Positions 1 to 4,846 of a stretch of 64,000 nt of DNA are shown here, piece after piece. The stretch covers positions 1,488,001 through 1,552,000 of the forward strand of contig JBLDXI010000009.1 in assembly GCA_047495785.1 (NCBI GenBank). The letters run 5' to 3'. Positions within the stretch are counted from its first letter, which is position 1. Each line of letters opens with the position of its first letter. The translations under genes were made by a program, and so were the position numbers. The notes beneath the pieces are model-generated. The model did not search any database and was not told where the DNA came from. It saw nothing but the letters and a program-made list of their open reading frames with translations. This DNA comes from Lepidodermella squamata (taxonomy: Eukaryota; Animalia; Gastrotricha).

Positions 1-534
1 TGTGTTTTGCATTCATCTTTATTGTTGTTTTACAGCTCCATATCTGCATCTGGCCGTTCTACTTTTTGTTGAATTTCTTCCCCTCAAGTAAAACTGTACA
101 CGTACCTAGTCATCAGTAATGGTGCGTAATACAAACACGCTGCCTGCTCAATGCGGAAACATTGCAATCTTATAGCGGAGTGACAAATCAGCCCGTGTCA
201 TATATGAAAGTTGTGAAATCGAGTTTTATATTGTTTTAGAAGATGTAAATATAGCCTTTTCTTGCTTGCCTTTTATATGAGAATTAATTTTTAGCTCTGA
301 TATTTGCTTGCCACCGGTGTTTCATCTGGTCAAAAAACTACTGAGCAATTTGTATCTGAAGTATATTGCCTCTGGTGCATTGTTGCATGTTTATTTCTAC
401 TTTTAATCTTTCAAACTGAAAAATTGCTCCATTTGAATTCCTGGTAAGCGATAAAACTACGTTTCAGATTCTTGGATCGATCGGATCTAATTTCTAGTTT
501 TACCCTCGATAGAATATTATTCTTTTGATAACGC

Positions 535-2233
535 ATGTCAAACGCTGGTGGTCAAATCGTTTTTCCTAATAATGTCGATGAATCGAAGCCTGCTAGTGAA
601 GATGGGGAATCTGAGGCTGAGCAGGTATCAGAGTCCAACGAGGCGATACCCCTGGTAACATCTCAAAAAAGGCGATATCCATCTGACGACGAAGCGCATC
701 ACAATACGTCTGGCAGTACCCATTCTAGTGGCTTCGGCCTTCCTCCGAACATGCCAATAGTGAGCTCAGCTTTCAAGCCCGCTGTTGCTCGTGCTACCGA
801 CGCCGTGAGTTTTTGATAATAGGGATCGAATATCCGCCACTTAGAGATGAAACGCTATTTTTCGACTGCAAACTTTGTTTGGGGTATTTTAGTTGACAGT
901 TTTTTGTATTCCCTACAGCCCATTGACACTGAGTTGTTGACTAACGAGGTCAGAATGATGTTGCGACAAAAGGGCATGCGCCAAACTGATCTCGCGCCGT
1001 TCATGGGCTGTCGACCAGGCAGCGTGGCCGGGGTTTTTGCGAAAGCTCATTTGCCTTGGTCTCAGTTGAATGACTTCAATCGAAACGCATTTACGGCGAT
1101 GGCTAGGTGGCTTGAAAATACTAAACTTGAGGTGGCTACACAAGCTGTTTACTCAGTTACCCAATCGTCAATTTCTCCATCGCCATCGCTGCATATACCT
1201 ATCGCTGTGCCTACCGAAACGGTGTCTACGTCGGGTCGCTCACCAGTTATCACCCCACCGGAGCCTCTGCTCCAACCATGGGCGGTTGCCAGCTACTCAA
1301 AGCATCCCGGTTATTTGTTGTTTCTAGAAAACTTGCATATTGCCCTTCCTAGTCGTGGGTTGGTCTTTCAAGGCGCGAACTTATCTCTCGCGCCTGGTAA
1401 AAGGTACGGTATTGTTGGGCCGAGTGAATGCGGCGCGTCAACGTTGATGAAATTCATCGCCGCCAAAGAAGATCTGAACATTCCAGCCGATTTCAGTATT
1501 GCCTATTGCGATCTTACCTCGACTAATGATGGCGGTGACGCTTGTGATGTGCCTGAAAATCAACGGGTAATTGACCATGTTCTACAACTTGAGAAGCGCT
1601 GGACGGCCTTAAAAGCAGAAGAATCGGTGATTGAACCTATGGTGCGTCGGGGTGATCGAGATGCATTTGCGAGACTACGCTTAATTTATGAACAACTTTG
1701 CTTCCTTGGTTCCGGGGTCGGTTTTATTTATCATGCATCGCTCATTTTAAGATCATTTTCATAGGCGGCCGAGGCAAAAGCTCGTCAACTGCTCACTGGA
1801 TTGGGCTTTTCGGTAGAGTCTCAAGAAGGGTTTATGAAAGATCTGAGCTTGCGTGGTCGAAAAGTCATCGGTTTGGCCCGTGCCTTGTTCGCCGAACCTG
1901 CGTTGTTGTTGATTGATAGACCGACGAATTTGTTAGACGTCGAATCTATCGCCTGGCTTGAAACGTATTTGAAAAGTGTGTCCTTTCTCATTAATTCTCG
2001 TTTTTCTATTCACCTTCTATTGATGCTGAAGATTGGCCCGGGTGTTTACTCATTGCTGCTCAAGATCGTTGTTTCATGGATGCCGTTTGTTCCGCAATAA
2101 TTTACGTCCACAGCCAAAAGCTTTTCTATTATCAAGGAAATTATTCTCGCTTTAAACAGGTAACGTTTTGAGCTGAAGGTCTTGACAGAATTTACGACTG
2201 CTTGTCTCTTTCCAGCAAATCTCTCAAAAATGA
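535..2233 (+). CDS. Chimeric protein: low-complexity N-terminus, divergent CUT domain, and a single degenerate ABC-F (ABCF1-like) nucleotide-binding domain; 5 exons
   Basis: Exons 535-804, 919-1716, 1765-1975, 2032-2159 and 2216-2233 join in frame via GT-AG introns. CUT-like IDT..L..Q..A..CRPGS..PWSQL..R..F..M..WLE. ABCF1-like GKRYGIVGP, AAEAKARQLLTGLGF, LARALFAEPALLLIDRPTNLLD, YYQGNYSRFK. AATAAA at 2291 and 2311. Confidence 0.75.
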
Positions 2234-2540
2234 CTCATTCCATGATAATCCTAGATGTCGGTATTATTTTGGGCGCCGGCGGACTTCGTGAATAAACCTA
2301 ATCTAAACGGAATAAAACCTATCAGGCAGTGATTTTCTTTATTTTTCACATTTTAAATATTTTTTCTCACATCCATACACCCACGCAATTAGGCAAAAAC
2401 AACATGAGCAGAGCAACCACTACACCACATATAGAACAGGAATGCTTCGGGGGCTGGGTTTTTTACGTCTTTCATTTTTTCGGCTAGTTATTTACAAAAC
2501 GCTTTATTTTTTACGCGTTAGACTTTTATTATTGATTGAG

Positions 2541-3636
2541 ATGTTTGTAAAACGGACGCTAGGTAACGTTCAACGCCGTTACCTCAGCAAGCGCGCGGCT
2601 TCCGTCCTTTCCGCGGATTTGCTGGGCAATTTCGAGGTGCAAAGCCAAAGCAAAGTTCACGCTCAACTGCGGCGATTCACCCCGTCTCATTTGCTGCCAG
2701 AACTTCACACGCCGAATATGTATGGCGGAGAAACGCTGGCTAACAGCTTATTAGCCGCGGCGAGAATCGTCGATCCAACCAAACGGCAACAACCATCTTC
2801 AATGACATTAGAGTTCTTGCGACCTGGAGCCTACGATAGCCCTATGGATTATTCTGTGACGAAAATGCACGAATCACATCGATTTATGCAGTCAAGTGTT
2901 TTTGTCAAGCAGAACGAACGAGCTTCGGCGCTCTCCAGTGTTTCCTTCCACTTCGAAGAACACGGCCCTGATAGTTTGTTGTTTGATCCGTCGTTTCCCG
3001 ATGACATACCGCCGCCATCTGTGATGCCGTTCACGGAATCTTGGGCTCAAGAACAGTGAGTGTTTACTTGATTTGATTAGAATTGAATTCGACATTTTCA
3101 CGCCTATTTTTATTGACACACTGTCCTAATATGTTTTCAGAGAATCACAACAATTCACACCTGCCTCGCACGTGCGTCTTTTTCTGGGCAAAATTCTCGG
3201 CCTTCAGGTGAAAGCTGTCGACCCTCATGCTTACCTTAGCTTGAATAAAAACCCGGTTACACGAAGTCGCTTCTGGGTTCGCGCCAACCCAGATGGAATT
3301 GAAGCATGCCTGCCATCACTCGGTAATTACTGGTCAGCCGCCTTGTTGGCTTACATGTCAGACTTCTGCCTTCTCGGCCCGGCCGTTACTGCCAGACCCG
3401 GTTTTAGAATTGGTAAAATGGTGTCGCTGAACCATGGCATGTGGTTTATGGCTCACCGATCAATGGCTCGCCCGACAGAGTGGGTCCTCATGGACTTGCG
3501 ACTGGTTCATTCAGGCAACAACGTATGCCTTTGTGAGTCGCTGATTTGGTCGGAGGAGAATCGACAACTTTTAGCGGTTTGCAAGCAACAAGGCTTGATC
3601 CGGCCGCAGAAGAAAACAACCAAACACGATTCTTAG
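2541..3636 (+). CDS. Acyl-CoA thioesterase II (TesB/ACOT8-like double hotdog), copy A; possible mitochondrial presequence
   Basis: YGGE..A..L.AA, FLRPG, LLAYMSDF, SLNHGMWF and QQGLIR motifs; intron 3056-3140; Arg/Ser-rich, acid-free N-terminus MFVKRTLGNVQRRYLSKRAAS. Confidence 0.8.
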
Positions 3637-3778
3637 TAGTATTTTCCTATTTATATCTTTATATAGAGATTTTCTGCTTAGATCGAACCGCTAACCGGTT
3701 AATATGAATTGTTATTGCAGAAATTGATAAAATTCTTCAAAAATTAACCGGCTGATTGTTTATACCTAGAGAGTTATA

Positions 3779-4846
3779 ATGAGTGAAAATGATGGGAAAA
3801 CGTCACTCATTGGCTTGAGGGCTCTCGGAAACTTCAAAGTTCAGTCAGACGAAGGAAATGTTGCTTTGCTATCGTAAGCTCAAAATTGTTTAATATTTTT
3901 GAAGTTTTATGTTTGAAATTTTCAGCCATGATCCGATTCAGTCGGATGGATTACCTCTGCCCTGGCAATATGGCGGTGATATAGCTGCTAATGTGATTCT
4001 GGCGGCAGCGACTCGGTTGCCAAAAGATTCGAAACTAAGCCCAATGTCGGTTCACATCGAGTACGTGAGCCCGGGTGATGTTACGAAAGTGCGTAATTAC
4101 CACGTTGAGCGTCTCCGCCAGTCTGACCGGTTCATGCACACCCTGGTGAAAATTCAACAGAAAGAGTGCGTCGCGATTGGCAATGTGACGTTCCACTCGA
4201 ATGAGCATACTGCGAATAGTCTTTCGTACATGCCTGAATTTCCCGCCGATTGCCCGCCGCCTCGTGATCTACAAGATCACTGGGAGTTATTGAAGAGCCT
4301 GCAAGATCACCACGATGAGGAGCATTTGAGTGAAGCGAATCGAATGGTTACGATTTCCCACGGGCTGGGTCTTACTGCGAGACCGGCTGTTCCTGAAAAG
4401 TATTTCCGCCTTGATCATGAATCTACGACTAGACTGACGTTTTGGCTGCAATACAGAGATAGCGGTAAGAATGCCGAATTTCGAAAACTCGTCTTTTTAA
4501 GGAGGATTTTTTATTAGAAATTGCGAAAATGTTTCCTGATATCGAATCAACGACTTGGTCAGCCGCCTTACTTGCCTATGCCTCAGATTTCCGCATAATG
4601 AGCCCAGCTATGCGACAGAGCCCAACTTATCAGTTGGGTCGTGTTGCTACGATGTCCCACTATTTGTGGTTCGCCCCCGATGCGAGTGTGCAGTTGAAAA
4701 GCCCGACCGAATGGTTCCTCTACGATGTTCGTGTTATCATGTCGGGGAATAATACTGTGCTGTGCGAAGGAAATCTCTGGAATGAGAACAAACAATTACT
4801 AGCCTGTGCGAAGCAGCAAGGACTTGCGCGCCCTAAGAACAAATAG
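3779..4846 (+). CDS. TesB/ACOT8-like thioesterase, copy B
   Basis: YGGDIAA, EYVSPG, LLAYASDF, TMSHYLWF, QQGLAR; introns 3874-3925 and 4465-4517. Confidence 0.8.

Follow-up and report, generated by a model that had tools for sequence, protein, structure and literature searches.

A transcribed gene joining a CUT domain to a degenerate ABCF1-type ATPase domain, and its probable small family behind ABCF1 in Lepidodermella squamata

Introduction

CUT domains are the textbook partners of homeodomains, and the nucleotide-binding domains (NBDs) of ABC-F proteins are, to our knowledge, known only as paired engines on the ribosome. In bacterial ABC-F proteins a helical arm contacts the L1 stalk, as in EttA-type structures, and the degenerate site of an asymmetric ABC transporter works beside an active site within one machine. 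Here we describe gene C, which occupies positions 535-2233 on the forward strand of a 64,000-nucleotide stretch of the gastrotrich Lepidodermella squamata (G000:C9:1488001-1552000, hereafter the window, from a 121-Mb eukaryotic assembly of 151 contigs). It encodes a CUT domain followed by a single ABCF1-type NBD in which every catalytic motif is altered, and it is very probably a functional, expressed member of a small lineage-restricted family that arose from a tandem duplicate of ABCF1 NBD1, to which one or two CUT repeats of the CUX type became joined.

With the CUT-class homeodomain factors (CUX/Cut, ONECUT/HNF-6 and SATB) gene C has in common the CUT fold and a detectable sequence relationship, nearest to the CUX-type repeats. 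It differs from them in the lack of a homeodomain anywhere (no Homeodomain match was obtained, and the genes downstream encode thioesterases), in a helix 3 that starts with Pro-Gly and not Gln-Gly, in the change of the RPKPW motif to KAHLPW, and in its partner domain, which is an ABC NBD. The likeness to ABCF1 (ABC50) lies in an NBD that groups with ABCF1 NBD1 and keeps the arm insert, in the stretch AAEAKAR, which is identical to that of the neighbouring ABCF1, and in the tandem position of the two genes. In contrast to ABCF1, gene C has one NBD, is without the linker (PtIM), NBD2 and the Lys/Glu-rich N-terminal domain, and has the Walker A Lys, Q-loop Gln, signature, catalytic Glu and H-loop His all replaced. 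The degenerate NBDs, or pseudo-ATPases, of asymmetric ABC transporters have likewise lost the catalytic consensus with the fold kept under selection, but their degenerate sites have an active counterpart, whereas the NBD of gene C stands alone, has lost all motifs and has a helix-turn-helix domain as its neighbour. Two ABC-F proteins reported to act at DNA or in transcription serve as precedents, by functional analogy only: mammalian ABCF1, as a coactivator for OCT4/SOX2 and a DNA sensor (PMC8555894), and Uup of E. coli, in the processing of branched DNA (PMC7145654, PMC7470958). Unlike gene C, both are full two-NBD, ATPase-competent proteins without a CUT domain; the coactivator function maps to the N-terminal low-complexity domain of ABCF1 and not to an NBD, and Uup uses its C-terminal domain.

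Results

Gene C has five exons and a coding sequence (CDS) of 1425 nt, or 474 codons, in which the sole stop codon is terminal. The window sequence is about 44% G+C and its introns are short. The exons are as follows.

535..804 (+), exon 1: start codon, then 90 N-terminal residues, acidic and rich in Ser, that match no family; intron GT at 805-806
919..1716 (+), exon 2: a single open frame with the CUT domain, a Ser/Pro-rich linker and the first half of the NBD
1765..1975 (+), exon 3: signature remnant LSLRGR and Walker B LLLIDR, with the D-loop LD retained
2032..2159 (+), exon 4: H-loop remnant AAQDR, after which the NBD ends
2216..2233 (+), exon 5: five codons, then the TGA stop

Two public sequencing runs, X1 and X2, were compared with the surrounding region (L012, C9:1484901-1490500; a window position equals the L012 position minus 3100). 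The results showed that the GT..AG joints 804/919, 1716/1765 and 2159/2216 are present in spliced X1 contigs, and that the 1975/2032 junction is read in loose contig ends of X1, where the end of exon 3 is joined to the start of exon 4. Run X2 covered the same DNA without any joint and is therefore taken as genomic DNA. That X1 derives from RNA is shown by its joints. Gene C is thus transcribed and all four of its introns are used in vivo. The first-pass annotation, made from the letters of this DNA, had proposed the same four introns, each of which is supported by X1 contigs (three by GT..AG joints, one by the loose ends), whereas its implied end of exon 1 at about 805 is corrected to 804. Its statement that the CUT domain and the NBD share one uninterrupted exon (919-1716) was borne out by reading the open frame directly. 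The frame, introns and structural residues that it described as intact are so, given the 474-codon CDS without an internal stop, the use of the splice sites and the retention of the hydrophobic core.

Exons of gene C were searched one by one, and pieces were concatenated only within local alignment and tree scripts. The N-terminal part of exon 2 carries the following domain.

919..1143 (+), CUT domain: 75 residues modelled; Pfam, family profile, AlphaFold2, Foldseek and VIA-align

With hmmscan, Pfam CUT (PF02376) matched residues 2-69 of exon 2 at 23.4 bits (E 6e-5) against a cut-off of 24.4 bits, and in a genome-wide PF02376 scan the same domain reached 26.5 bits, a result that on the sequence score alone places gene C at the borderline of the Pfam criterion. 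The genome-wide scan returned a clear ONECUT gene, a CUX gene with three repeats, and three weaker matches above the cut-off, all of them at this locus (two in gene B, which precedes gene C, and one in gene C). Gene B scored 44.2 bits over its two domains, and its metagenomic ortholog P0002 scored 39.2 bits. An alignment of six CUT domains of the family (A1: gene C, two of gene B, one of the metagenomic protein P0001 and two of P0002) was used as a profile against all PDB sequences. The seven best matches were all CUT domains (Cux-2, HNF-6, ONECUT2; E 2e-4 to 6e-3) with the whole domain covered, and XRE-type repressors appeared only at E above 0.1. AlphaFold2 run on A1 gave a confident helical model with a predicted local distance difference test (pLDDT) score of 94.5. 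Foldseek placed CUX2 CUT domains first for this model (template-modelling (TM) score 0.72-0.75, root-mean-square deviation (rmsd) 1.6-1.8 Å, best E 6e-3). With VIA-align the ten best matches were CUT domains (Z 9.7-7.2, rmsd 1.7-3.7 over 67-74 residues); POU-specific/HNF1 domains came next (Z 5.7-6.7), and XRE helix-turn-helix domains reached about 4. The predicted structure is therefore that of a helical CUT fold, nearer to CUT than to POU-specific or XRE helix-turn-helix domains. Vertebrate CUX proteins matched the CUT part of exon 2 in an exhaustive phmmer search at a library-wide E of about 1e-5, and the family profile run on the own genome scored a CUX repeat at 35 bits versus 21.6 bits for ONECUT; by these sequence scores the family CUT domains therefore look CUX-derived. 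Together, Pfam, the PDB profile matches and the predicted fold support the earlier assignment of a CUT domain.

The remainder of the protein is made up largely of the NBD. Its motifs were compared with those of ABCF1 of the same genome.

1309..2159 (+), degenerate ABCF1-type NBD1: exons 2-4, ending in GNYSRFKQ and including the ABC-F helical arm insert
1417..1443 (+), Walker A: GPNGYGKTT in ABCF1, GPSECGAST in gene C; Lys to Ala at 1435-1437
1513..1515 (+), Q-loop: CEQE in ABCF1, CDLT in gene C; Gln to Leu
1843-1860 (+), signature: FSGGWR in ABCF1, LSLRGR in gene C
1903-1920 (+, LLLIDR), Walker B: LLLLDEPT in ABCF1, LLLIDRPT in gene C; catalytic Glu to Arg
2055-2069 (+, AAQDR), H-loop: VSHD in ABCF1, AAQD in gene C; His to Gln at 2061-2063

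The ABC_tran match started on exon 2 and ended on exon 3, and the NBD was 41% identical to NBD1 of the own-genome ABCF1 over 234 columns; a derivation from ABCF1 NBD1 is supported by this comparison and by the tree described below. The claim that every ATPase motif is altered holds for Walker A, the signature, Walker B and the H-loop, each changed as described, and extends to the Q-loop. Since the Walker A Lys, the catalytic Glu, the signature and the H-loop His are lost, general ABC enzymology suggests that the NBD of gene C probably does not hydrolyse ATP and would bind it weakly at best or not at all. The D-loop LD remains, as do the hydrophobic core and the helical arm insert of ABC-F proteins. 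In addition, most columns that are invariant in the clade of gene C and its paralogs D and E fall within the arm insert, and such a conserved fold with its arm fits a protein-interaction surface. The open reading frame (ORF) runs five codons beyond GNYSRFKQ and ends just where the ABC-F linker begins; no second NBD follows, and ABC_tran_Xtn left only a 14-bit trace in gene C. A protein with one NBD and no homeodomain had been proposed, in agreement with an ORF that stops right after the GNYxxFK end of NBD1 and with the absence of a Homeodomain match on any exon.

The first-pass annotation had missed that gene C is one member of a family which stands in tandem behind ABCF1 and has both paralogs and orthologs. 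The order on the contig is ABCF1, gene B, gene C, and thioesterase genes come next. The members in this genome and the ABCF1 gene are listed here, together with the two proteins of the same architecture that were found elsewhere.

ABCF1, directly upstream (L009 5743-6564 and 7016-9145): two NBDs, motifs intact
Gene B, G000:C9:1485379-1488072 (L012 479-3172) (+): CUT, AT-hook (KRKRGRP), CUT, NBD
Gene B last coding exon and stop, window 36..72 (+): from spliced X1 contigs, joints at L012 2348/2964 and about 3084/3136
Gene D, contig C11, about 193-201 kb (-): CUT (split by an intron) and NBD; GPSECGTS and LLLIDQPT, H-loop His kept
Gene E, C11:1882485-1883700 (L011 4485-5700), with a second copy in the C29:2709020 region (L018): NBD only
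P0001, 545 aa: KKKKKR, then a CUT-like domain and a dead NBD with GPSGSGSS and LLIVDQPS, H-loop kept; ortholog of D
P0002, 630 aa: two each of CUT domains and AT-hooks, and an NBD in which Walker A and B are intact; ortholog of B

The separate, intact ABCF1 gene that the annotation had left for confirmation was found directly upstream with both NBDs intact. In gene B the Walker A Lys and the Walker B Asp-Glu are kept, whereas the signature and the H-loop His (TNC) are lost, a change of the H-loop that is also seen in P0002; judged by these motifs, gene B may still bind ATP. Gene E has the Walker A Lys, LLLIDRPT and an H-loop Gln, and no CUT exon was detected within 4.5 kb upstream of it. Its two copies may represent haplotypes or homeologs that have diverged; alternatively, they form a duplicate pair on which constraint is very strong.

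P0001 and P0002 come from two metagenome assemblies and represent two organisms. They were the only two proteins of the same architecture returned by the exhaustive phmmer search with exon 2 against 1.84 billion representatives. A word-index protein search with the exon-2 ORF gave no match; with P0001 it returned that protein itself and distant ABC-F proteins only, and with gene B it was swamped by ABC-F proteins and yielded no family member. Two metagenome contig scans, with alignments of the C/D/E clade and of the B type, gave no further members, and an ESM Atlas feature search returned generic ABC clusters only. No ortholog of gene C itself was found in the word-index, phmmer or metagenome searches. 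A literature search found no paper linking 'CUT domain' with ABCF1 or ABC-F. The view that this architecture had not been described is in keeping with these results, and the CUT-NBD combination looks undescribed.

The descent of the family was analysed with a maximum-likelihood tree of 49 NBDs, in which the exon pieces of split genes were concatenated. The six family NBDs formed one clade (support 96/92), which lay within a group made up of the own-genome ABCF1 NBD1 and its closest relatives (82/92). Within the family the topology was (B,P0002), at 100/100, and (E,(C,(D,P0001))), at 100/99, 97/89 and 100/99. In addition, all six family genes have a phase-1 intron exactly one base past the YL[KQ] codon, ahead of the H-loop, and the own-genome ABCF1 is continuous there; this shared derived intron is thus a second, independent sign that the family has a single origin. 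Given that gene C split from D before the organism of P0001 separated from that of D (97/89), it is to be read from the tree as older than the split from the D-ortholog organism; it is old, not a fresh duplicate, and has long been kept intact.

Substitution patterns were then considered in the public runs, which differ from the assembly by about 1-2%, and between paralogs. Among the strain differences listed, 40 of 78 and hence a sample, gene C carried 6 synonymous and 1 non-synonymous and gene B 16 synonymous and 2 non-synonymous. Between gene C and its paralogs D and E the non-synonymous and synonymous proportions of differences were pN 0.30-0.32 and pS 0.89 (C versus D: pN 0.30, pS 0.89), which are given in place of dN/dS, the ratio of the corresponding rates, because the synonymous sites are saturated. 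The two copies of gene E differed at 30 synonymous and 0 non-synonymous positions in 254 codons (dS about 0.19). Gene C is under purifying selection. The annotation had held that the gene is selected and not decaying, and the spliced transcript, the 6:1 ratio among the listed strain differences and a pN of 0.30 against saturated pS agree with it.

Further observations concern the neighbourhood. The 3′ untranslated region (3′ UTR) of gene B runs to about window position 468. The X1 transcript of gene B appears six bases short at window 36-48 (L012 3136-3148), by one copy of an ATCTGC/ATCTGG tandem, and this difference in the last coding exon would be an in-frame indel polymorphism. The X1 contig over the 3′ UTR ends at about 468, after TTTCAG, which leaves about 70 bases to the start of gene C at 535. 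Such operon-like spacing between B and C, in window 461-535, prompts one to ask whether the two genes are co-transcribed or trans-splicing is involved; a leader sequence was not observed. Downstream of gene C, window 2442-4517 holds two tandem acyl-CoA thioesterase genes (4HBT_3 / 4HBT_3C / Acyl_CoA_thio). The contig also carries, about 300 kb upstream, the CUX gene with its three CUT repeats (G000:C9:1186364-1188494, L026), the first-listed of which is the genome's best match to the family CUT-like profile (35 bits). Upstream of ABCF1 there is a 752-aa single-exon ORF with a 23-residue poly-Gln run (L009 403-2661; G000:C9:1476403-1478661, minus strand).

Discussion

We propose that the NBD of gene C would have been kept as a folded, non-catalytic interaction module whose most conserved surface is the helical arm insert. 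The CUT domain would take the protein to nucleic acid, most likely nuclear DNA or chromatin, and its specificity would differ from that of classical CUT domains. The protein could then act as a non-enzymatic adaptor, perhaps NBD-paired with gene B or with another family member. A nuclear location is suggested by the AT-hook KRKRGRP, which lies between the CUT domains of B and of P0002, and by the KKKKKR cluster just before the CUT domain of P0001, which together point to nuclear DNA or chromatin. This function, a non-catalytic nuclear adaptor with non-classical binding of nucleic acid and possible NBD pairing within the family, is inferred from sequence and is held tentatively, at somewhat under even odds, even though it is the best of the functional readings considered. 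Taken as a whole, family membership together with the adaptor mechanism is our best explanation, to which we assign a probability of roughly 0.55.

Several observations weigh against this explanation. In SATB1, Gln402 and Gly403 at the start of helix 3 contact bases and are reportedly perfectly conserved among CUT domains, and DNA binding is lowered about 50-fold by Q402A and about 10-fold by G403A (PMC1976457). In the alignment the recognition helix of gene C starts with Arg-Pro-Gly in comparison to the canonical Ser/Thr-Gln-Gly, and the base-contacting Gln is replaced in all six family CUT domains, the other five having Glu-Ala, Leu-Pro, Ile-Arg and similar pairs at the Gln-Gly site. The equivalent of Ser406 (SATB1 numbering) is Ala in gene C, whereas the helix 2 Gln (SATB1 Gln390), which frames DNA binding, is retained. 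Given the loss of Gln in all six domains, the Ala at the Ser406 position and the effect of Q402A in SATB1, classical sequence-specific DNA reading by gene C appears unlikely, and from its residues DNA binding as such is uncertain. The fold and descent of the domain are those of CUT; classical base reading is doubtful. The first-pass interpretation, a selected pseudo-ATPase scaffold between DNA binding and ABCF-type ribosome or RNA partners, is supported in part: the domain identities, the loss of motifs and the selection hold, and DNA binding and such partners stay conjectural. In addition, an AT-hook is missing from gene C, whose basic cluster, QKRRY, is weak, and its conserved arm could equally fit a ribosome-linked role. 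The strain differences that speak for selection are a sample. Moreover, on the contig of P0002 (L014) the order is the end of ABCF1, the gene B ortholog and a thioesterase, with no gene C in between. The gene is thus not universally required, and it looks to have been either inserted into, or lost from, a conserved ABCF1-gene B-thioesterase arrangement.

The main rival to the adaptor role is that gene C is a translation-linked regulator, in which the arm-bearing NBD1 remnant would dock on the partners of ABCF1 (the ribosomal L1-stalk region, eIF2 or ABCF1 itself), the CUT-like domain would bind ribosomal or messenger RNA, and the protein would modulate or compete with ABCF1. The origin of the NBD from ABCF1 NBD1, the tandem position with ABCF1, the conservation of the arm as the best-kept part of the C/D/E clade and the loss of the DNA base-reading Gln would all suit such a role, and helix-turn-helix domains can bind ribosomes, as with Mbf1, whose chains are among the weak structural matches (Z about 4.2). 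However, gene C lacks NBD2 and the tRNA-contacting linker, both required for the clamping of ABC-F proteins in the E site. The presence of AT-hooks in gene B and its ortholog points to DNA, and the CUT-like domain is structurally far nearer to CUT (Z 7-10) than to Mbf1 (Z 4). We regard this role as unlikely.

More far-reaching objections would deny gene C a function or its CUT domain. It might be a decaying chimeric pseudogene or a transcribed relic of the tandem ABCF1 duplication without a function of its own, as could be argued from the destruction of all its catalytic motifs, its absence at the syntenic site of a related organism and the failure to find an ortholog of gene C itself elsewhere. 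Against this stand a 474-codon ORF that is open over five exons with canonical, used splice sites, 6 synonymous against 1 non-synonymous of the listed strain differences, a pN of 0.30 relative to D and E where synonymous sites are saturated, a branching before the separation of D and P0001 (97/89) that implies long maintenance, and the retention of the hydrophobic core and structural motifs. With the frame intact, all introns spliced and substitutions that are not neutral-like, a decaying pseudogene is excluded for practical purposes; we rejected this explanation, which is already largely refuted and very improbable. Scarcely credible, in turn, is a chance or generic XRE- or POU-like helix-turn-helix likeness that would leave no CUT fusion at all. 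Gene C alone does fall under the Pfam cut-off with hmmscan (23.4 versus 24.4 bits), the Foldseek E-values are weak for so short a domain (best 6e-3), and the Gln-Gly hallmark of helix 3 is not retained. In contrast, the three paralogous domains of the locus lie above the CUT cut-off in the genome scan, with gene B at 44.2 and P0002 at 39.2 bits. The seven best PDB profile matches are all CUT while XRE begins at E 0.1, the ten best structural matches are all CUT (Z 7.2-9.7) as opposed to 5.7-6.7 for POU/HNF1 and about 4 for XRE, and the family profile finds the CUX repeat of the own genome at 35 bits. A chance match was therefore rejected on profile and structural evidence.

A bolder and more doubtful extension of the adaptor proposal is that in one animal lineage a lone ABC ATPase domain was turned into a non-catalytic module in a family of nucleic-acid-binding CUT-NBD regulators. 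Its members might pair through their degenerate NBDs, for instance an ATP-binding B with a nucleotide-blind C or D, and might serve as a new class of chromatin or transcription factors or as ribosome-tethered antagonists of ABCF1.

Gene C is built from known domains, and what is new is their combination, as a small conserved family that so far spans one genome and two metagenomic organisms. The coupling of CUT, without a homeodomain, to an ABC ATPase domain gives CUT a new partner. The family shows that a lone ABC-F NBD can lose every catalytic residue and yet stay long under selection. The series from ABCF1, with both NBDs intact, through B, with Walker A and B kept, and E, with the Walker A Lys only, to C, with all lost, and D, likewise regarded as dead, makes the birth of a pseudo-enzyme directly testable. 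If binding to DNA or to the ribosome proves true, gene C and its relatives would represent a new type of regulator, and they would give a first example of the exaptation of an ABC-F NBD, as a pseudo-enzyme scaffold linked to a DNA-binding domain of the homeobox class.

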